Position numbers and translations under genes: made by a program | Source of the DNA: Pseudomonas aeruginosa PAO1 | GTDB lineage: Bacteria; Pseudomonadota; Gammaproteobacteria; Pseudomonadales; Pseudomonadaceae | Length of the DNA: 64,000 nucleotides | Assembly: GCF_000006765.1 (NCBI RefSeq) | Contig: NC_002516.2 | Reading direction: 5' to 3' (one strand) | Notes under the pieces: generated by a model | The model's database searches: none | Told to the model about the DNA's origin: nothing | What the model saw: only the letters and a program-made list of their open reading frames with translations | In this document: positions 1 through 9,552 of the stretch, in pieces | Numbering within the stretch: the first letter of the stretch is position 1 | How the letters are laid out: the number at the start of each line of letters is the position of its first letter

Positions 1-324
1 GGTGAACCAGGCCAGGCGGTCGCCCACCAGGCGCCGCACCCACTGGTAGCAGCCGCCGGCCAGCGGAAACTGCGAGGACAGCTCGGCGTAGACCAGCGCC
101 ACGCCGAACTGCAGCAGCAGGCACAGCGGCACCACCCAGACCCAGGAGGGGCCCATGCTCATGGCGCCGAGGGACATCACCGAGTAGATGCCCACCACCG
201 GCGAGATGGTAGCGAAGCCGACGGAAAAGGACGACCACAGGCTCAGCCCGCGCTCCAGTTCCTGGCGATAGCCGTGGGCCGCCAGCAGGCGTTCGTCGCG
301 GGAGGTATCGCGGAGATCAGTCAT
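1..324 (-). CDS. APC-family amino acid permease, N-terminal part (runs off window)
   Basis: Manual translation from ATG at 324: MTDLRDTSRDERLLAAHGYRQELERGLSLWSSFSVGFATISPVVGIYS, a typical APC permease N-terminus. Confidence 0.8.
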   Translation of the reverse strand, partial: MTDLRDTSRDERLLAAHGYRQELERGLSLWSSFSVGFATISPVVGIYSVMSLGAMSMGPSWVWVVPLCLLLQFGVALVYAELSSQFPLAGGCYQWVRRLVGDRLAWFT

Positions 325-583
325 GGCGGTCTCCGGGCGAGCGCTGCGGGGAAGGGGAAAGGCGGATGCCACCGATGCGATGGGTGAGCATGGAGAGTCC
401 TCGTCGGCTATTGGAATTGTTATGGCCGCTTCCGGGACGAGCGAAAGCGTGGCAGACGCAGGTTAGGCGGATTACCTATCAGGATGAATTCATATTCGAT
501 TGGGCTGGCATCAGGAAAACCTGATGTATGGCCAGGCCCCGAGAAGGCCGGCTCCTGCGAAGGGAGCCGGCCGGTCGCGGCAG

Positions 584-2500
584 TTACTTCAGGTCCTCGC
601 GCGGCGGTTTGCCGGGCTGGCTGGCGTAGTCCGGCAGGGCGCTGATCGCCTGTTCCTTGTCGGGGATGCTGGACGGGTCGAGGTCGCCGCCGACGTTGCG
701 CGGGTCGGTGGGGATCGCCGAGGGAATCACCACGGTGCGCTCGGCCAGCGGCCAGCCGAGAATGGTCTCCAGGCGCCCGCCTTCCTCCTCGGGGCCGGTG
801 ATGGCGTCCAGGCGCAGCGGCAGCGGATGGCCGATCAGCCGTTCGACCTCGCCCGCCGCCTCCGGCGCGGCCAGGGTCAGGCCGGTGCGGTAGAAGCCCG
901 GCAGACTCGAGCGCGGCACATAGACCCGCAGCAGGGCACCGTTGCGGATCCGGCCGCGCGCGTCGGGTTCCTGGTCCTGGGCGTAGCCGTAGGCCAGCGC
1001 CGGATCGCCGGCGATATAGAAACCGCGCCAGATCGCGTCGAGGTCCTGGCTGCGCGCGCGCACCCCGCCGAAGACGATGCTTTGCGCCGCTTCGAGGAAG
1101 GTGCCGTGGTAGCCGACGAACACATAGCCGCGCTCCTCCAGTTGGCGGTGCGCCTGGAGCAGCCGCTCCACCGTCCAGTTCTGCGTGCCGCGGGTGCTGA
1201 AGCTGATGTCGCCGCCGTCGCCGAGGAACTCCGCGCCAGTGGGATAGTTGCGCTCCAGCAGGGCGTCGCCGCTGTCCGCCGGGCCCGCGCATTCACCGGC
1301 GGCGACCGGGCAGGTCAGGCTCACCACGTCGGCGCTGGCCGCGCCGGCCTCGTCGTTGCCTGTGCCCTGCCGGACGAAGCGCTCGCTCTCGGCGGCGGCC
1401 AGGGTCAGGGCCAGACGGGCCTGCTCCGGCTGCTCGCGGATCGCTTCGCCCAGGTCGCCGCCGCTGCCGGGGCTGGCCAGGGCGTTGCGGATCACCTGGT
1501 CGACCTGGTTCCACGACAGCCGCGCCGCCAGGTAGAGGGCGACCAGCCGCTGCACCGGATAGCCGCACTGCTCCAGTTGTTCCCAGCCGCGCGGCTGGCG
1601 ATGACGGGTGAAGGTCTCCAGCGGCAGGTGGCAGGCCTGGTGCGCGGTCAGCGCGGCCAGGCTGCCGCCCTCGGGGAAATGCAGGCGATGACTGATGACC
1701 GTGGGCTTGATGTCCAGGTCATGCTTCGCCGGGTTGCCGGCGAGCACCCGGTAGATCTTGCCTTCCCAGGTATCGTCGAGGTTGCAGCGCTGCTGGGCGA
1801 GGTAGTTGTAGACCCCGTCCAGCGGGTCGAGCAGGCACAACACCTTGCCGCTGGCCCATTCGCTCCAGCGCTTTTCCCGGCGCGGCTGGGCCTGGGCCAT
1901 GACCACGCTGACCCCGGCATGGCTGATGGCGAGCGTCGGCTGCATCTCGTTGCTCTCGTGCGCCCTGACGAAGAAGGTGGCATCGCGCGCCAGCTTCGCC
2001 AGCAACTCGTCGCCCATCTCGATGGTGTAGATCGGCGACATGTGGCTGAGCTGGTTACCGGCGTTCAGTTCGTGGATGAACACCTTGATGTTCGAAGGCT
2101 TCTCGTGGCCGATCGGCACCAGCCAGTTCAGCGACCAACTGCCGCGCGCCTGGCGCGTGTAGCTGTAGCGCACCGGCTTGTTCGGCTCGACGCCACCTTC
2201 GAGGCGGATGGTCAGGCCGTCGCTGGTGATGCTGAGGGCGTTGTCGATGGCCAGCTTGAGCGCGTCGTTGCCGCCCTCCAGGACCATGGAGTAGTGCAGC
2301 ACGCCCTGGCCGTTGGTGTCGGCGATGGCCGGGTCGACGCTCATGCGGCTGGAACGCACGCCGTCCTTGAGGTCGAGCACGCAGGCCTTGGCGCATTCGT
2401 TCCAGAGGTCGAAGGCTTCCTCGGCGGCGGACGCGAACGAGCCGCCGGCGAGCAGGCCGAGGCTGGCGACCAGGGGGATCCAATGGGGTGTCAGGTGCAT
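584..2500 (-). CDS. toxA: Exotoxin A precursor (EF-2 ADP-ribosyltransferase)
   Basis: 638 aa; signal peptide then AEEAFDLWNEC; furin site RHRQPR; YHGT motif; C-terminal REDLK. Confidence 0.99.
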   Translation of the reverse strand: MHLTPHWIPLVASLGLLAGGSFASAAEEAFDLWNECAKACVLDLKDGVRSSRMSVDPAIADTNGQGVLHYSMVLEGGNDALKLAIDNALSITSDGLTIRLEGGVEPNKPVRYSYTRQARGSWSLNWLVPIGHEKPSNIKVFIHELNAGNQLSHMSPIYTIEMGDELLAKLARDATFFVRAHESNEMQPTLAISHAGVSVVMAQAQPRREKRWSEWASGKVLCLLDPLDGVYNYLAQQRCNLDDTWEGKIYRVLAGNPAKHDLDIKPTVISHRLHFPEGGSLAALTAHQACHLPLETFTRHRQPRGWEQLEQCGYPVQRLVALYLAARLSWNQVDQVIRNALASPGSGGDLGEAIREQPEQARLALTLAAAESERFVRQGTGNDEAGAASADVVSLTCPVAAGECAGPADSGDALLERNYPTGAEFLGDGGDISFSTRGTQNWTVERLLQAHRQLEERGYVFVGYHGTFLEAAQSIVFGGVRARSQDLDAIWRGFYIAGDPALAYGYAQDQEPDARGRIRNGALLRVYVPRSSLPGFYRTGLTLAAPEAAGEVERLIGHPLPLRLDAITGPEEEGGRLETILGWPLAERTVVIPSAIPTDPRNVGGDLDPSSIPDKEQAISALPDYASQPGKPPREDLK

Positions 2501-2749
2501 CGCGATGGCTCCTTTGATGGGTGAAGGATGAGGCTGATCGAGCGGTTGGTTTTTCTTGTCGGGCGAGCCGGCGGAGAGCGGCGGGGCGTCTAGGGTGCGG
2601 GTTGCGGGGAGGCTGGCGGGGAGCGGAAGAGAGCTTTTATGGGATTTATGAACTGGATTGCAGAGTGGTGAATGTGCGAACGGGAGGCTTGCCGATCGGA
2701 GGATACATGCAGGGCGTCCATCTCGGCCTGGTGGTGGCAGCCCGGCCTG

Positions 2750-3118
2750 TCAGTCAGGCGCCTGACAACCCAGGGTGACGACCAGTTCGCGGCCGCTCGC
2801 CAAGCCGGCGTCCGCCGCCAGGGTCAGCGTGCGCGGCGTGTCCTGGCGACTATCGAGCAGCCCCTCTTGAAGCACGAGGCTGTCGGCGCTGGCGCCCCTG
2901 GCCAGCAGCCGATATCGCACCAGCGCCGAGGTACAGCCGCATTCGCCGGTGGAGCGCCGGGCCTCAAGGGTGAGTGGCAGGTGCAACTGGCCCTCCGCCG
3001 TGTGCGGTGCACCGAGCCGGGCGGCGAGGCAGGCGGAGAGAGCATTGTCGAGCGTCGCCGCGTCGGCGAATGGGGCGGCCAGGCAGAGGCTGCCGAGGAG
3101 CAGGGCTTTGGCGTCCAT
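2750..3118 (-). CDS. Small exported Cys-containing hypothetical protein
   Basis: 122 aa; signal-peptide-like N-terminus (MDAKALLLGSLCLAAPFADA), CGC motif and C-terminal LGCQAPD. Confidence 0.7.
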   Translation of the reverse strand: MDAKALLLGSLCLAAPFADAATLDNALSACLAARLGAPHTAEGQLHLPLTLEARRSTGECGCTSALVRYRLLARGASADSLVLQEGLLDSRQDTPRTLTLAADAGLASGRELVVTLGCQAPD

Positions 3119-3478
3119 GTCGGGGTTCCGCTGGGGATGGAAAGGGCATCATGGCTGAGGTGGCTTTATTCGTCGAACAATGGCTGGCCCTGCCGGTATA
3201 TCGGCCAGGACTTCAAGCGTTGCGGAAACGGCCTGACCAGCTGCAGCGGCTTGCAATCAAAAACGCTGGGCTCGCAATCAGCGTGGCTTTGTCCGGAAGC
3301 TCGCGAAGGGGCGGCATGGATGAATTTTGAAAGTGGGAGTTCGTTAATGAACCGAAGGTATGCGGCTTCCGTGACTGGCCGGGGTAGATGAGGTGTGCGT
3401 TAAGGAAATGACCGTTTGACGCAGGCGCGATTATAAGAGGCGAGAGAGCGCACCTTCTGGATCATCTAAACACGGGAT

Positions 3479-3529
3479 ATTGAAGTTGATTGCAGTGTAT
3501 TGCCGATGCATTGGGGCTTATTGACTGGG
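3479..3529 (+). promoter_or_regulatory. Pyocin P-box (PrtN-responsive repeats)
   Basis: ATTG at 3479, 3489, 3499, 3510 and 3520 (10-11 bp period) upstream of the pyocin gene; fits the ATTGnn(n)GT P-box repeat. Confidence 0.8.
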
Positions 3530-3593
3530 AGAGGGTTCTCTAGGTGGGAGTCGCTCAATACATTACACTTTCAAATTAATGTAGGGGCGATCT

Positions 3594-5663
3594 ATGGCTG
3601 TCAATGATTACGAACCTGGTTCGATGGTTATTACACATGTGCAGGGTGGTGGGCGTGACATAATCCAGTATATTCCTGCTCGATCAAGCTACGGTACTCC
3701 ACCATTTGTCCCACCAGGACCAAGTCCGTATGTCGGTACTGGAATGCAGGAGTACAGGAAGCTAAGAAGTACGCTTGATAAGTCCCATTCAGAACTCAAG
3801 AAAAACCTGAAAAATGAAACCCTGAAGGAGGTTGATGAACTCAAGAGTGAAGCGGGGTTGCCAGGTAAAGCGGTCAGTGCCAATGACATCCGCGATGAAA
3901 AGAGTATCGTTGATGCACTCATGGATGCCAAAGCAAAATCGCTAAAGGCCATTGAGGATCGCCCGGCCAATCTTTATACGGCTTCAGACTTTCCTCAGAA
4001 GTCAGAGTCGATGTACCAGAGTCAGTTGCTGGCCAGCCGAAAATTCTATGGAGAGTTCCTGGATCGCCATATGAGTGAGCTGGCCAAAGCGTACAGCGCC
4101 GATATCTATAAGGCGCAAATCGCTATCTTGAAACAAACGTCTCAAGAGCTGGAGAATAAAGCCCGGTCATTGGAAGCAGAAGCCCAGCGAGCCGCTGCTG
4201 AGGTGGAGGCGGACTACAAGGCCAGGAAGGCAAATGTCGAGAAAAAAGTGCAGTCCGAGCTTGACCAGGCTGGGAATGCTTTGCCTCAACTGACCAATCC
4301 AACGCCAGAGCAGTGGCTTGAACGCGCTACTCAACTGGTTACGCAGGCGATCGCCAATAAGAAGAAATTGCAGACTGCAAACAATGCCTTGATTGCCAAG
4401 GCACCCAATGCACTGGAGAAACAAAAGGCAACCTACAACGCCGATCTCCTAGTGGATGAAATCGCCAGCCTGCAAGCACGGCTGGACAAGCTGAACGCCG
4501 AAACGGCAAGGCGCAAGGAAATCGCTCGTCAAGCGGCGATCAGGGCTGCCAATACTTATGCCATGCCAGCCAATGGCAGCGTTGTCGCCACCGCCGCAGG
4601 CCGGGGTCTGATCCAGGTCGCACAAGGCGCCGCATCCCTTGCTCAAGCGATCTCCGATGCGATTGCCGTCCTGGGCCGGGTCCTGGCTTCAGCACCCTCG
4701 GTGATGGCCGTGGGCTTTGCCAGTCTGACCTACTCCTCCCGGACTGCCGAGCAATGGCAGGACCAAACGCCCGATAGCGTTCGTTACGCCCTGGGCATGG
4801 ATGCCGCTAAATTGGGGCTTCCCCCAAGCGTAAACCTGAACGCGGTTGCAAAAGCCAGCGGTACCGTCGATCTGCCGATGCGCCTGACCAACGAGGCACG
4901 AGGCAACACGACGACCCTTTCGGTGGTCAGCACCGATGGTGTGAGCGTTCCGAAAGCCGTTCCGGTCCGGATGGCGGCCTACAATGCCACGACAGGCCTG
5001 TACGAGGTTACGGTTCCCTCTACGACCGCAGAAGCGCCGCCACTGATCCTGACCTGGACGCCGGCGAGTCCTCCAGGAAACCAGAACCCTTCGAGTACCA
5101 CTCCGGTCGTACCGAAGCCGGTGCCGGTATATGAGGGAGCGACCCTTACACCGGTGAAGGCTACCCCGGAAACCTATCCTGGGGTGATTACACTACCGGA
5201 AGACCTGATCATCGGCTTCCCGGCCGACTCGGGGATCAAGCCGATCTATGTGATGTTCAGGGATCCGCGGGATGTACCTGGTGCTGCGACTGGCAAGGGA
5301 CAGCCCGTCAGCGGTAATTGGCTCGGCGCCGCCTCTCAAGGTGAGGGGGCTCCAATTCCAAGCCAGATTGCGGATAAACTACGTGGTAAGACATTCAAAA
5401 ACTGGCGGGACTTTCGGGAACAATTCTGGATAGCTGTGGCTAATGATCCTGAGTTAAGTAAACAGTTTAATCCTGGTAGTTTAGCTGTAATGAGAGATGG
5501 AGGGGCTCCTTATGTCAGAGAGTCAGAACAGGCTGGCGGGAGAATAAAGATCGAAATCCACCACAAGGTTCGAATAGCAGATGGAGGCGGCGTTTACAAT
5601 ATGGGGAACCTTGTTGCAGTAACGCCAAAACGTCATATAGAAATCCACAAGGGAGGGAAGTGA
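3594..5663 (+). CDS. pys2: Pyocin S2 killing protein (HNH DNase)
   Basis: 689 aa; pyocin S domain ending PIYVMFRDPR; C-terminal HNH motif EIHHKV...GNL...HIEIH. Confidence 0.97.
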   Translation: MAVNDYEPGSMVITHVQGGGRDIIQYIPARSSYGTPPFVPPGPSPYVGTGMQEYRKLRSTLDKSHSELKKNLKNETLKEVDELKSEAGLPGKAVSANDIRDEKSIVDALMDAKAKSLKAIEDRPANLYTASDFPQKSESMYQSQLLASRKFYGEFLDRHMSELAKAYSADIYKAQIAILKQTSQELENKARSLEAEAQRAAAEVEADYKARKANVEKKVQSELDQAGNALPQLTNPTPEQWLERATQLVTQAIANKKKLQTANNALIAKAPNALEKQKATYNADLLVDEIASLQARLDKLNAETARRKEIARQAAIRAANTYAMPANGSVVATAAGRGLIQVAQGAASLAQAISDAIAVLGRVLASAPSVMAVGFASLTYSSRTAEQWQDQTPDSVRYALGMDAAKLGLPPSVNLNAVAKASGTVDLPMRLTNEARGNTTTLSVVSTDGVSVPKAVPVRMAAYNATTGLYEVTVPSTTAEAPPLILTWTPASPPGNQNPSSTTPVVPKPVPVYEGATLTPVKATPETYPGVITLPEDLIIGFPADSGIKPIYVMFRDPRDVPGAATGKGQPVSGNWLGAASQGEGAPIPSQIADKLRGKTFKNWRDFREQFWIAVANDPELSKQFNPGSLAVMRDGGAPYVRESEQAGGRIKIEIHHKVRIADGGGVYNMGNLVAVTPKRHIEIHKGGK

Positions 5664-5664
5664 T

Positions 5665-5928
5665 ATGAAGTCCAAGATTTCCGAATATACGGAAAAAGAG
5701 TTTCTTGAGTTTGTTAAAGACATATACACAAACAATAAGAAAAAGTTCCCTACCGAGGAGTCTCATATTCAAGCCGTGCTTGAATTTAAAAAACTAACGG
5801 AACACCCAAGCGGCTCAGACCTTCTTTACTACCCCAACGAAAATAGAGAAGATAGCCCAGCTGGAGTTGTAAAGGAAGTTAAAGAATGGCGTGCTTCCAA
5901 GGGGCTTCCTGGCTTTAAGGCCGGTTAG
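5665..5928 (+). CDS. imm2: Pyocin S2 immunity protein
   Basis: 87 aa colicin E DNase-immunity family (YTEKEFLEF...HPSGSDLLYYP...EWRASKGLPGFK), 1 bp after the toxin stop. Confidence 0.97.
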   Translation: MKSKISEYTEKEFLEFVKDIYTNNKKKFPTEESHIQAVLEFKKLTEHPSGSDLLYYPNENREDSPAGVVKEVKEWRASKGLPGFKAG

Positions 5929-5937
5929 TTGGCCATC

Positions 5938-5965
5938 AACAAGCCCCGTTTCGACGGGGCTTGTT
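5938..5965 (+). terminator. Hairpin downstream of imm2
   Basis: AACAAGCCCCGT-TTCG-ACGGGGCTTGTT, a 12-bp perfect stem with a UUCG loop. Confidence 0.75.
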
Positions 5966-6026
5966 CCATGTTGACGCTGCTCTATCTTGACAGTCTGTCC
6001 TGAATATTCTTGAAGACAATCACATT

Positions 6027-6286
6027 ATGAGCCGCAACCACCGCAAAACACCCATCGTCGGGCGCACGAGCTGCCGTAGCGAGCTCTCCACGTTGGCCAG
6101 CAGCCCACCTCTCCCTACTGGAAAGTCAGGTCAATAACACTGGTGCCACGTAAGGATGGGCGTTCCTACTGGCCCCTCATACGCCAGGCTGCTACGGCAG
6201 ATCGTGTCGCTAACCTCAAGGGACACAACCCGCAAGAACGCGCGTCCCTGAAAAAGCGCCTGCTGCGCAAGTGGATGAGCAAATGA
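6027..6286 (+). pseudogene. Degenerate small hypothetical gene (MSRNHRKTPIVG...[10 protein letters not shown])
   Basis: Recognisable N- and C-terminal segments lie in different frames with stops between them; the final TGA overlaps the next ATG (ATGA). Confidence 0.6.
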
Positions 6287-6638
6287 GTACATCCAACATC
6301 CAGGCATTGGCCAGCACTGGGCACAGCTCGCCAAAGAAGCGGGATTCCGAGCCGACTATGACAGCACATCAACGCCAGAAACACATCTGGTCTGCGGAGT
6401 AACCCAAGAGTGGATTCGAGAACACATCGTTGCCACCAACGATATGCGCCCGTTCGGCCTGCTGCATTTGCTGGGTCAGGCATCGTTGCGCATGGAGCAA
6501 GCGTTGTGGCCGGAAGATTACGAGCGGATGACTCGTAAGGTCAAGGGAGTCCAGCGGGAAGCTGAAGGCGACAACGCCAAATCATACATTTATGAAGAAG
6601 TCATGCAGATAAGGCAGGAGCGCTTCGATAAAGCACGA
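6283..6638 (+). pseudogene. Frameshifted hypothetical gene, possibly antitoxin-like; its 3' half is the start of ORF 6444..6788
   Basis: ATG 6283 reads [11 protein letters not shown], then a frameshift at ~6316-6318 gives [15 protein letters not shown]...[32 protein letters not shown]...QERFDKAR. Confidence 0.55.
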
Positions 6639-6804
6639 CATAATTTGCAAGGGGTTTGTCATAGGTATCAAGGATCCAATTATTTTACAGTCCTGATACT
6701 AGTATTGTGGTTGTTCTCAAAGAGGATGGAATGTTTTTGTCAGGGTGGTATCTTGAGCCAGGAAGCAGACAGGAAAAAACTATTTTGAGAATGAGGTGAT
6801 TTAA
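6639..6804 (+). pseudogene. Colicin D-like tRNase C-terminal remnant (two 1-nt deletions)
   Basis: Reconstructed GS(K)LFYSPDTSIVVVLKEDGMFLSGWYLEPGSRQEK(N)YFENEVI*, versus colicin D GSKVYFNPNTMNVVIIKSNGEFLSGW (recalled). TAA 6802-6804 abuts the immunity ATG at 6805. Confidence 0.75.
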
Positions 6805-7077
6805 ATGAGCATGGCACTTATTGATCTTGCAAGAGATTTTTTGGATGGATCGTTAAGCGGAAAGAGTTTCACAAAAAAATTCTTTGAAATGTGGCGTAGC
6901 GAAGGTGCGTCAGGCTTGCTGAAAAAGGATGATGATAATCTTGGCGCTTGCCTCAGGCTTATGTTTGGAATGGCAGATTGCTTCACGGATGGACCGAAGG
7001 ATAATGATGGTGAGATAAATGAAGAGGAGCTAAAGCAGGAAGTTAGAGGGCTTTTGAAGAAATATAAATATATCTAG
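6805..7077 (+). CDS. Orphan colicin D-type immunity protein
   Basis: 90 aa; MALIDLARDFL...MADCF...EINEEELKQEVRGLLKKY resembles ImmD; GAGGTG RBS upstream. Confidence 0.85.
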   Translation: MSMALIDLARDFLDGSLSGKSFTKKFFEMWRSEGASGLLKKDDDNLGACLRLMFGMADCFTDGPKDNDGEINEEELKQEVRGLLKKYKYI

Positions 7078-7108
7078 CTGATGATCCTTTATATCCGAAG
7101 ATATAGAT

Positions 7109-7144
7109 CAGGCGAAGTCAGTTTATGGGCTTCGCCTGTTTCTT
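7109..7144 (+). terminator. Putative intrinsic terminator
   Basis: CAGGCGAAG...CTTCGCCTG stem followed by TTTCTT. Confidence 0.6.
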
Positions 7145-7246
7145 AGCCAATCCATGCTTCGAGAGCAGATGTAAATCGCCGAATTGTCAGTTAGTGCGTC
7201 AGTCGCAAAATGCGTGAGTCTGCGATTTTGAATTGAAAGCCTTGTG

Positions 7247-7496
7247 TATTACTATCCTGCTCCGGCAACACTACCTGCCTTCCCCGACGCCTTGAGAGCT
7301 AAGCCAAAAACTTCTATTCAAGGTGGTGGTGGGTTGCGGAAGCACTGGAAGGATAAAAGGGAATATCTATAAATGGGATTCTCAGCATGGCAGTTTTGAG
7401 ATGTATGACAAGAGAGGGTGGCACTTGGGAGGGTTTGATTCTAATGCTGGTGCTCGCACGAAGTCTGCTGATCCAAAAAGGAGTGTAGAAGCATGA
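7247..7496 (+). pseudogene. Colicin E3 / pyocin S6-like rRNase domain remnant (frameshift at 7355-7358)
   Basis: YYPAPATLPAFPDALRAKPKTSIQGGGGLRKHWKDK / GNIYKWDSQHGSFEMYDKRGWHLGGFDSNAGARTKSADPKRSVEA*; the WDSQHG..E motif is retained; its stop overlaps the next ATG. Confidence 0.88.
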
Positions 7497-7726
7497 CTGT
7501 ATTGATTTCTGGGTACCTACCATCGGGAAATGATGAGTCCTTGAAATATGAAAAAACTGTTCCTTTCGAATATATTTCGAAAGTTATGGAGGTGATGCGT
7601 TGGAAGAAGGGTGAGAATATTGAGGGTGAATATCCTATTAAGAATGATGATGTTGTAAGGATTGAGGAGGTTATAGGCGAAAAGCTTCCGGTTGGATTGG
7701 AGTATTTTATTGGGGTTTACGCCTAA
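7493..7726 (+). CDS. Orphan immunity protein, probable pyocin S6 (rRNase) type
   Basis: 77 aa acidic, low-GC ORF coupled by an ATGA overlap to the rRNase remnant. Confidence 0.8.
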   Translation: MTVLISGYLPSGNDESLKYEKTVPFEYISKVMEVMRWKKGENIEGEYPIKNDDVVRIEEVIGEKLPVGLEYFIGVYA

Positions 7727-7931
7727 CTATAGATTGTAGAGGAAGGTCCTGCTGCATGGGGGTTCTTTTTAAATTTAAAAATATTCTATTTGGCAATAGA
7801 GTGCTCTTCCTTGGCCTGATAGTTGTAAAGAAAGAGAGCGTTACTGGAAAAACCTAGATTTTTAATGGTCATGAGGGAAAAGATCACTCTGTTGCTTCAA
7901 GCCCTGACTCCTTTCAGGGCGTATGACGGGG

Positions 7932-8486
7932 TCAGGCCCGGATCAGCGGGCGTGGACTGTCGAGGAGTTGGGGGCAGTCGGAGAGGGGGATCCAGGTCTT
8001 GCCTTGCCAGTGCAGGGTGTCGATCTCGGCGGTTTTCCAGTGCAGCACGGCGCGCTGGGGCGTGGCGTTGGGGCGGGACTGGCTGCGCAGGCGTGGCAGC
8101 ACCGAGCCGCTGACCCAACGGCGCAAACCCCGTGCCGCGCCAGGCGCTGCGAGCCAGAGCAGAGCGTAGAGCCCGGACTCGCTGACCAGGCAGTCCTGGC
8201 GTGGCCCGTGGCGTTCGTCATGGAGCCAGGCGAGCCGCCACTGATCGGTGTCCAGATGCCGCTCCAGCGCATGGCAGAGGGCGAACAAGCGCTCGCGCTG
8301 TTCCGCCGTCGCCAGCGGCCACGGCGCCTCGTCACACAACGCCGCCGGCGCCCGACCGCCCAGGTAACGGCCCAGCAGCCGTACCAGGTCGGAGAGCACG
8401 AACCAGCCTTCCTCATCCAGCAGCACGGCGCGCAGGACCCGATGGTGGTGGGTGAAACGGCTGGGTTGGAGGAGGGTGTCAGACAT
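7932..8486 (-). CDS. BRO-N domain protein (phage antirepressor-like)
   Basis: MSDTLLQPSRF...LRAVLLDEEGWFVLSDL...LVSESGLYALL...LRRWVSGSVLPRL; start set at ATG 8486. Confidence 0.85.
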   Translation of the reverse strand: MSDTLLQPSRFTHHHRVLRAVLLDEEGWFVLSDLVRLLGRYLGGRAPAALCDEAPWPLATAEQRERLFALCHALERHLDTDQWRLAWLHDERHGPRQDCLVSESGLYALLWLAAPGAARGLRRWVSGSVLPRLRSQSRPNATPQRAVLHWKTAEIDTLHWQGKTWIPLSDCPQLLDSPRPLIRA

Positions 8487-8673
8487 GGCGCACCTCCGGG
8501 GAGGTGGTGTTGGTGTCGTGCCGCGAGGGGATGAATGGGGTGGGTTGAAAAACGAATGGCATACGCATTTCCTCAATGGAATACACCGCTACTTTCGGGA
8601 ACGGTTTGCCGCTGGGTGGTATGCGTTCTTAGCGCCGAAGAATGATTATGGAGCGCACCGATAGCGGTCAACG

Positions 8674-8706
8674 GTAGGGCGAATAACTGCAAAGCAGTTA
8701 TCCGCC
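8674..8706 (+). repeat. REP element 1
   Basis: GTAGGGCGAATAAC-TGCAAAGCA-GTTATCCGCC: GTAG tetranucleotide plus imperfect palindrome. Confidence 0.9.
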
Positions 8707-9018: not shown

Positions 9019-9552
9019 TCAAACCCGCTCGGCCGCCCGGACCTCCAAGGAAGGATCACCGGCCCAATCCTCGGGATAAAGCCCATCAGCCACGGCCCGG
9101 TGGAAGGTGGAGAAGGGCCAATCCTTGACCGCCGTAACCAGCCCGTGTTTCACAGGGTTGAGATGGATGTAGTCGAAATGGCGCCGGTAGTCCGTGTCAT
9201 TGCGAATCAGGTGTTCCCAGTAGCGCTGCTGCCAGATGGCGCGTTGTCCTCGCCGCCGTTGCGCGAAGGTACGTGATTCGTGGCAGGGGATGCGCCGTGC
9301 GAAGCCGGACTTGATGACCTTCCAGCGGGTGGCGAAATCGGCGTCGTCGGGCGGCAGGGTCCAGAGGCAATGCATGTGCTCCGGCAGCACGACCCAGGCA
9401 TCGATGCGGAAGGGATGCCGGCGCCTGGTCTGGGCGACCACGCGGCGCAGCAGGTCGATTTCGCGGGTCAGCAGGTTGGAGCGGCGGTCATGCAGGGTGA
9501 CGGTGAAGAAATAGGTGCCGCCGGGGACCCAGGTTCGTCGGTAGCTTGGCAT
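9019..9552 (-). mobile_element. REP-associated tyrosine transposase (RAYT, IS200/IS605-related HUH Y1)
   Basis: 177 aa; GGTYFFTV, PEHMHCLW (HUH), WQQRYWEH and DYIHLNPVKHG (catalytic Tyr); flanked by REPs. Confidence 0.93.

Follow-up and report, generated by a model that had tools for sequence, protein, structure and literature searches.

The pyocin S2 locus of Pseudomonas aeruginosa PAO1 carries, downstream of the intact S2 toxin and immunity genes, two orphan immunity genes that are each preceded by the broken 3' end of a nuclease toxin gene. Serial replacement of killing domain-immunity modules, with orphan cassettes left behind, is the best explanation of this locus, and we place its probability at roughly 85%. 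The stretch concerned (5929-7726) was analysed within 64,000 nucleotides (nt) of contig NC_002516.2, hereafter the window, to which positions refer unless a comparator locus is named. The arrangement is real but already known. Dingemans et al. (PMC4905994) described it in 2016 for the PAO1 pyocin S2 locus, reporting a 250-nt 3' remnant of a pyocin S6 toxin gene, both orphan immunity genes (the second with PF09204 and downstream of PA1152), a remnant of a Tn3-family open reading frame (ORF; citing Denayer et al. 2007), and the occurrence of these orphans in DK2 and in an S1 producer as well. The gene order of the window is the order given in that study; nothing essential differs from the published locus, and nothing categorically new was found. 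The details added here are a tRNA nuclease (tRNase) toxin remnant, the typing of its orphan as SD3-like, a chimeric PA1152-like ORF, a breakpoint map, figures for breaks and diversity, and a link to transposons and megaplasmids.

The S2 module itself is complete. The pys2 gene (3594-5663, plus strand, 689 amino acids (aa)) encodes a receptor-binding/translocation part followed by an HNH DNase killing domain (Pyocin_S at aa 415-554; Col-Pyo_DNase at aa 563-686, E 3e-49), and behind it lies the intact cognate DNase immunity gene imm2 (5665-5928, plus strand, 87 aa; PF01320, E 1e-36). The original prediction, made from the sequence alone, had placed two consecutive cassettes of a frameshifted nuclease C-terminus and an intact immunity ORF behind pys2 and imm2, and had counted HNH DNase, tRNase and rRNA nuclease (rRNase) classes together at one locus. 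Both statements were borne out, with two gap events in a tRNase remnant, one in an rRNase remnant, and matches to Col-Pyo_DNase, to a colicin D-type domain and to PF09000. Remnant pieces lying in different frames were searched individually, never as a joined sequence.

To place the cassettes in context, intact comparator loci were gathered through homologues of the immunity proteins and of pyocin S2. Comparison of the toxA-adjacent locus across strains, as the original prediction had proposed, revealed intact S6, SD1-like and SD2 counterparts at the same site. These were a 571-aa pyocin S6 with its immunity gene (L013), a 591-aa SD1-like pyocin with a Colicin_D domain and its immunity gene (L031), and a 662-aa SD2 pyocin with ImSD2 (L029); a 740-aa SD3-type pyocin with its immunity gene (L034) was found at a different site. 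A further locus encodes a 711-aa pyocin (L001 3016-5408) whose S2 receptor-binding/translocation part is 98.5% identical in nucleotide sequence up to window position 5259; its killing domain and its 85-aa immunity protein matched no Pfam family. A toxA-less version of the site was also observed (L026-L028), in which another pyocin, with a killing domain that has no Pfam match, comes with an immunity gene of 85 aa; an SD3-like orphan sharing 86% identity with the window orphan is present there, and the rRNase cassette is missing.

Alignment of these loci revealed one left breakpoint and several right ones. The receptor-binding/translocation part of the S6, SD1-like, SD2, 711-aa and toxA-less-strain types at the toxA-nrd site was 90-98.5% identical to the window, whereas the sixth kind of comparator, the SD3-type locus L034 at the other site, aligned at only 70%. 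Homology to the window ended at 5255-5260, the last codons of the Pyocin_S domain, in L001, L013, L026, L029 and L031, and weakly in L034. On the right it returned at 6681 in L001, at 6649-6662 in L031, L034 and L026, at 7249 in L013, and at about 7870-7890 in all. A common left breakpoint with varied points of resumption indicates that the units of exchange are modules of a killing domain and its immunity gene, with or without trailing DNA. The rRNase remnant, in addition, starts within 17 nt of the junction at which S2 and S6 diverge in the intact S6 gene. Together with the shared left breakpoint, this supports the earlier proposal of successive toxin-domain replacement.

The right-hand cassette derives from a pyocin S6-type gene. 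Its toxin remnant (7249-7496, plus strand, 248 nt) spans a whole colicin E3-type rRNase domain and is 92.7% identical in nucleotide sequence to L013 6755-7004. Two pieces in two frames matched PF09000 with 58.7 and 45 bits (gathering score 22) and together covered profile positions 2-80 of 80. The remnant corresponds to the last 83 of the 571 codons (last 250 nt) of the intact L013 gene, with homology starting at codon 490 of 571, and is separated from it by one frameshifting gap event and 18 substitutions, none of them nonsense. Equivalents of D533 and E540, two published catalytic residues whose mutation abolished S6 activity (PMC4905994), are retained in its codons. It has no start codon and no receptor-binding or translocation part, and nothing upstream of it is pyocin-like. 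Its indel state was identical in 12 of 12 loci compared.

Behind this remnant lies an open, 77-aa orphan immunity gene of the pyocin S6 family (7493-7726, plus strand), which matched the NF040643 equivalog with 84 bits against a cut-off of 30 (model positions 2-78 of 78). An S6-type orphan had been mentioned for PAO1 in the original prediction, and this is the gene described in PMC4905994. An AGGAG Shine-Dalgarno sequence precedes it, and an ATGA overlap joins its start to the stop of the last remnant piece; the same toxin-immunity layout was found behind the intact S6 gene in L013. The encoded protein is 86% identical to the L013 cognate, with no indels, and the whole of 7249-8049 aligns with L013 6755-7549 at 87.7%. 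The exact 77-aa sequence was present on at least 1000 contigs, and full-length forms dominate. The spacer that separates the two cassettes (7147-7248) is common to L026 and L001 and is not shared with L031, L034 or L013.

The left-hand cassette begins with a 156-nt 3' remnant of a colicin D-type (SD3-type) tRNase pyocin gene (6649-6804, plus strand), 92-93% identical in nucleotide sequence to the toxin 3' ends in L031 and L034. It represents the last ~158 nt (~52 of 591 codons) of the L031-type gene, everything upstream being gone, and differs from the intact gene by two single-base gap events, which render it frameshifted. A piece of the remnant matched residues 53-84 of colicin D (1tfk_A) by phmmer (E 1e-4), and tblastn aligned it with aa 659-692 of the 700-aa toxin of L008, an intact tRNase pyocin from a Pseudomonas metagenome-assembled genome (E 2e-10). 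The match to PF11429 stayed below the gathering score (E 0.12; 13.2 bits against a cut-off of 25; profile positions 51-77 of 84). We hold the tRNase homology to be secure despite this, given the 1tfk_A match and the 92% nucleotide identity to L031; with the PF09000 matches of the right-hand remnant, both tips thus show the nuclease-family homology that had been claimed for them. The catalytic N-terminal half of the tRNase domain is gone, and the equivalents of K608 and H611, named as the colicin D catalytic residues in PMC4964976, lie upstream of the retained part.

The stop codon of the tRNase remnant directly abuts the ATG of an open, 90-aa orphan immunity gene (6805-7077, plus strand), which has a Shine-Dalgarno-like GAGG upstream. 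Its product matched PF09204 (54.9 bits against 22; profile positions 1-87 of 88) and, over residues 2-88, the colicin D immunity chain 1v74_B (E 1e-3). It is 97% identical to the cognate protein of the 740-aa pyocin in L034, 96% identical to that of the 591-aa pyocin in L031, and 54% identical to ImSD2 (L029). The reverse primer of McCaughey et al. (PMC4964976) matches the 662-aa pyocin gene of L029 with 2 mismatches and the window with >8, which identifies L029 as their SD2 type. On these sequence comparisons the 90-aa orphan should be typed as SD3-like, not SD2-like. The alignment with L031 and L034 extends over 6649-7146 at 93%, running through the immunity gene and a terminator-like hairpin with a T-run (7109-7138, plus strand; an 11-pair stem with 7 GC pairs, then TTTCTT), which falls within the stretch common to both. 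The exact 90-aa sequence was found on at least 1000 contigs, and the full-length form dominates its cluster. A tblastn search of plasmids with the 90-aa protein recovered only distant enterobacterial colicin D-type pairs. Separately, a metagenome contig (L005 130-1776) carries three tandem PF09204 immunity genes, 36-63% identical to the window orphan and with no full toxin gene in view, a possible tRNase immunity array.

We next considered 5929-6648, which had been taken as part of a low-GC cassette series filling all of 5929-7726. The low-GC island spans ~3300-7860, and GC content was 0.37-0.48 over ~6600-7800, compared with 0.65-0.75 in the flanks, so the low-GC part of that description stands. 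GC over 5929-6648 was 0.54-0.56, the cassettes occupy only 6649-7726, and a transposon-derived block had been overlooked. The idea that the whole of 5929-7726 is toxin tip was rejected, as no nuclease homology was found in 5929-6650 by Pfam searches of all stop-to-stop pieces. Over a third of the stretch (5970-6638) is instead a decayed two-gene block, not nuclease, with 77-85% identity to a segment on >1,500 plasmid records; 5929-6648 also contains a terminator-like hairpin.

In plasmid pBS1141 (L002), the matching segment comprises the last two genes (hyp108 and hyp123, 108 and 123 aa) inside the right inverted repeat of a 5.6-kb Tn3-family transposon, and neither protein belongs to a known family. 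In the window, the hyp108 homologue (6027-6283, plus strand) is shortened and broken over three frames; tblastn with the L002 and L003 proteins gave three high-scoring segment pairs (HSPs) in three frames at 72-78% identity. The hyp123 homologue (6303-6638, plus strand; E 6e-56, 70% identity by tblastn) keeps to one frame over aa 8-119. The homologue lacks a start at the expected place, with no ATG, GTG or TTG in frame before 6444, and its 3' end is cut off together with the inverted repeat of the transposon. No copy of the 38-nt L002 inverted repeat was found in the window with up to 10 mismatches allowed, nor was one found in L003 or L034. The window therefore lacks the features that define a Tn3-family transposon; only two damaged homologues of passenger genes are present.

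This block also accounts for a small ORF of 114 aa (6444-6788, plus strand), called as a gene in many assemblies and corresponding in position to PA1152 of PMC4905994. The beginning of this frame falls within the hyp123 HSP, and its last part overlaps the tRNase remnant in another frame. It matched no Pfam or NCBIfam family, and PA1152 appeared in the literature only in a gene-association table. The 114-aa ORF is probably a chimeric reading frame, in which the tail of the hyp123 homologue runs out of frame across the tRNase remnant, and not a functional gene.

Related arrangements were observed on mobile elements. The L002 transposon (152-5792) has 38-bp inverted repeats that are 95% complementary and, besides tnpA and tnpR, contains a RelE/ParE-HTH pair plus three small hypothetical genes; the block at its right end is present on >1,500 plasmid records from Klebsiella, Enterobacter, Pseudomonas and others. 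Five P. aeruginosa megaplasmids (L003 1-5790, CP124675; also CP136985, NZ_CP133756, CP109684 and CP109756) carry, with 100% mutual identity, a 772-aa S-type DNase pyocin and its immunity gene adjoining a Tn3-family transposase and resolvase, with hyp108 and hyp123 directly behind. The RelE/ParE-HTH pair of L002 occupies the slot that is held by the pyocin-immunity pair in L003. At the SD3-type locus (L034 2070-6514), a resolvase gene lies upstream of the 740-aa tRNase pyocin, and hyp108 and hyp123 lie downstream of its immunity gene. The order pyocin-immunity-hyp108-hyp123 is thus a recurrent arrangement (L003, L034).

Variation among S2-type loci was distributed unevenly. Across 10-12 of these loci, 5665-6638 was almost invariant (4 variable sites in ~970 nt), and imm2 itself had 1 variable site across 10 loci. 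In contrast, 6677-7723 was polymorphic (114 variable sites in ~1,050 nt). A near-invariant S2 module and transposon-derived block alongside a polymorphic orphan region is consistent with the S2 module having arrived once and recently, beside orphan DNA of greater age. The window shares its junction of immunity gene, hyp108 and hyp123 with the megaplasmid DNase pyocin and with L034, which suggests that the S2 killing module came from such a context. From these sequence comparisons, a transposon-borne pyocin may have supplied the active S2 DNase module to the chromosomal hot spot, although we regard this origin as rather unlikely.

On the serial-replacement model, the S-type pyocin genes at the site share a conserved receptor-binding/translocation part, behind which new modules of killing domain and immunity gene would be recombined in, with the left crossover at the end of the Pyocin_S domain. 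Where replacement was inexact, the end of the resident killing domain and its immunity gene would be displaced downstream and survive as an orphan cassette. What this would have left here is, first, the active DNase module (the pys2 killing domain and imm2), which would have brought the decayed two-gene block with it; next, ~52 codons of an SD3-type tRNase toxin with the 90-aa immunity gene; and last, the complete, frameshifted rRNase domain of an S6/S7-type toxin with the 77-aa immunity gene. The order of the replacement events is what we infer. One comparator (L001) has a weak Pyocin_S fragment and a tRNase end behind a different killing module, which hints that some insertions duplicated part of the translocation domain and that it was later deleted. 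Loss of a toxin with retention of its immunity gene was also seen directly, through an insertion sequence inside the S6 gene (L014 4050-7004) and through frameshifted pys2 genes (L018, L020). Short pyocin gene calls were considered as a sign of widespread toxin decay and rejected as artefacts. In L012, L015, L016, L017 and L021-L025 the records give pyocin genes of only 241-424 aa, or none, despite full-length open DNA, so that database gene calls understate intact pyocins; the genes truly broken were those of L014, L018 and L020 only.

The two kinds of component differ in what they can still do. Frameshifted and without a start codon or delivery domains, the remnants are incapable of yielding toxin. 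The immunity ORFs, for their part, are intact; by homology, their products would be expected to behave like other such proteins, which bind an incoming nuclease domain in the cytoplasm and thereby block it. For the S6-type orphan only, cheater-type protection against a non-self pyocin, as originally predicted, has experimental backing: once cloned, the PAO1 gene confers protection on a sensitive strain, and PAO1 itself is not sensitive to S6 (PMC4905994). Its sequence type suggests that the tRNase-type orphan would protect against SD3-type, not SD2-type, pyocins. As to the toxin ends, we infer that they persist mainly because they carry the translation and transcription signals of the immunity genes.

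Several observations weigh against this account, the first of which concerns the joins. No match to a translocation domain was found before either tip (none significant in a search of the spacer at 7078-7300), which leaves the right-hand joins unexplained by simple homologous exchange. The second is that substitution statistics do not separate 'selected' immunity genes from 'decaying' tips. The immunity ORFs had no indel or stop in the loci compared (11 loci for the tRNase type), and the ratio of non-synonymous to synonymous polymorphism (pN/pS) was 0.27 for the 90-aa ORF and 0.29 for the 77-aa ORF, compared with 0.66-1.7 in wrong frames. The corresponding ratio of substitution rates (dN/dS) of the immunity ORFs was 0.16-0.17 against cognate genes and 0.28-0.40 among orphans. 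When the reading frame of the intact genes was imposed on the tips, leaving out gap codons, however, the dN/dS of the tips was equally low (0.21-0.33), with no nonsense substitutions. The claim of purifying selection on the immunity genes while the tips decay is not supported by these values; tips as conserved as the immunity ORFs imply that most of the divergence predates orphaning or was imported by recombination from intact alleles. Gap events numbered three over the 404 nt of tips, whereas the 504 nt of immunity genes had none; such a split would arise by chance with a probability of ~9% and is suggestive only.

The other observations on this side concern the tRNase-type orphan and the signals for expression. 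This orphan is unannotated in many records, and the product of the window in the protein collection is a 53-aa call though the 90-aa frame is open; PMC13712311 states that orphan immunities of this type are often unannotated. Alleles P0002 and P0011 have scrambled N-termini, which suggests a possible loss of constraint in part of the population. PMC13712311 also left out one family of S12 (=SD3) orphan immunities that lack annotation, on the ground that they do not protect, with reference to McCaughey et al. A promoter scan gave 6 sites where 3.8 +/- 1.9 were expected from shuffles; there was no enrichment and the sites were weak, among them one at 7184-7211 in the spacer (9/12 match) and one at 6656-6683 that is not conserved in the intact comparator.

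These points would be accounted for if only the S6-type orphan were functional and the tRNase-type cassette were neutral debris, unexpressed or non-protective, that hitch-hikes in a recombination hot spot. This is the strongest alternative, possible although we think it improbable. In addition to the scrambled or replaced N-termini and the exclusion by PMC13712311, it would explain the cluster members of 62-64 aa and the gene calls of 53-57 aa, and it would fit an orphan that has a strong terminator-like hairpin after the imm2 region and only the weak site at 6656-6683 upstream. The low dN/dS of the tips shows, moreover, that a low value for the ORF is no proof of current constraint. Against this, the 90-aa ORF was open and without indels in 11 of 11 loci, with an orphan-versus-orphan dN/dS of 0.28-0.29. 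Its near-identity to the cognate SD3-type immunity protein (97%) and the dominance of the full-length form, on at least 1000 contigs as the exact sequence, argue in the same direction. The basis of the non-protection statement was not found in the main text of McCaughey et al. (PMC4964976), where only killing of PAO1 by SD2 was found. The sensitivity of PAO1 to SD2 is no test of the orphan, since ImSD2 is only 54% identical to it.

A second alternative is that the toxin ends are kept as regulatory leaders, supplying an internal promoter, a ribosome-binding site and a coupled upstream frame, with selection acting on the tips as well as on the immunity genes. In nuclease colicin systems, the immunity gene has a constitutive promoter that is located within the colicin gene. 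The ATGA overlap at the start of the S6-type immunity gene, the abutting stop and ATG in the tRNase-type cassette, the low tip dN/dS and the fact that neither tip has gained a stop codon by substitution are all consistent with such a role. In addition, the S6 immunity gene is expressed at a higher level than the toxin gene, and the sequence that precedes the orphan in PAO1 hardly differs from its counterpart in the producer (PMC4905994). However, the scan found no promoter-like site inside the rRNase remnant, and the counts are small (about 5 synonymous versus 5 non-synonymous polymorphisms in the rRNase tip). Divergence before inactivation, or gene conversion from intact alleles, explains the low dN/dS equally well, and the PAO1 gene was functional when cloned with only its own ribosome-binding site (PMC4905994). 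Selection for leaders on the tips is unlikely in our view, slightly more so than the debris explanation.

Finally, the tips could be a stored reservoir for toxin switching, from which recombination would return an orphan tip behind delivery domains, a role that has been proposed for the orphan modules of contact-dependent growth inhibition (CDI) and Rhs systems. The rRNase remnant is a complete domain that keeps its catalytic codons and starts at the domain junction, and the locus clearly exchanges modules; yet the same frameshifted rRNase tip was present in 12 of 12 loci, the tRNase tip has lost the catalytic half of its domain, and neither tip is preceded by translocation-domain homology that could guide recombination, which makes this role very improbable.

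Serial module replacement remains the preferred reading. The locus can be compared with known toxin-immunity arrays. CDI and Rhs loci carry orphan cdiA-CT/cdiI and rhs-CT/rhsI modules, stacked downstream of a full-length system and variable between strains, and these orphans typically retain part of the conserved pre-toxin region, through which they can be recombined back. The analogy drawn with them in the original prediction holds for the layout: in the window, too, toxin C-terminal ends without a delivery part, each with its own immunity gene behind, lie downstream of a full-length system. It fails for re-use, as the upstream homology retained in CDI and Rhs orphans was absent in the search of 7078-7300; only L001 keeps its weak Pyocin_S fragment. 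Pyocins also differ from contact-dependent CDI and Rhs toxins in being soluble bacteriocins that enter through siderophore receptors. CDI orphans are mentioned in PMC13712311.

Closer relatives are found among the nuclease colicins and pyocins. The remnants and the 90-aa ORF belong with colicin E3/ImmE3 and colicin D/ImmD, falling into PF09000, PF11429-like and PF09204 families with matches to PDB 1tfk and 1v74. Unlike ImmE3, the S6-family immunity protein forms a distinct family (NF040643) with no Pfam match to the colicin E3 immunity family, and it is 18.5% identical to colicin E3 immunity (PMC4905994). Unlike colicins E3 and D, the toxins are fused to pyocin and not colicin delivery domains, and only fragments of them are present in the window. 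The left-hand cassette is of the class of pyocins SD1, SD2 and SD3 (S11/S12; McCaughey et al. 2016, PMC4964976), which combine a colicin D-type killing domain with a 90-aa immunity protein. In contrast to the SD1, SD2 and SD3 loci, the window has no intact tRNase pyocin, and its orphan matches SD3-type immunity and not the PAO1-killing SD2 type.

As a whole, this is a mosaic pyocin locus already known from PAO1-like P. aeruginosa, where it lies between toxA and the nrd genes. To its left lie the exotoxin A gene (584-2500, minus strand, 638 aa; three Exotox-A Pfam domains) and, between that gene and the low-GC island, a DUF2195 gene (2750-3118, minus strand). To its right, a Bro-N-like gene (7932-8576, minus strand) is followed by the minus-strand gene of an IS200-like transposase (9019-9552), with the nrd genes farther along in related loci. 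The transposase ORF (177 aa), whose IS200-like Y1 transposase domain was matched with E 6e-5, lies between the Bro-N-like gene and the nrd region and is present in some related loci and absent from others. No Rfam family matched over 3200-8700, and minus-strand ORFs in the interval under study gave no family matches.

If the S2 DNase module did arrive from a transposon-borne pyocin, S-type pyocin-immunity pairs would be cargo, and possibly addiction modules, of Tn3-family elements, and traffic from plasmid to chromosome, besides recombination between strains, would add to the stack of orphan cassettes. Orphan immunity genes determine the range of strains that a pyocin can kill, and they therefore bear on the prediction of strain competition and on the use of pyocins as narrow-spectrum antibacterials.

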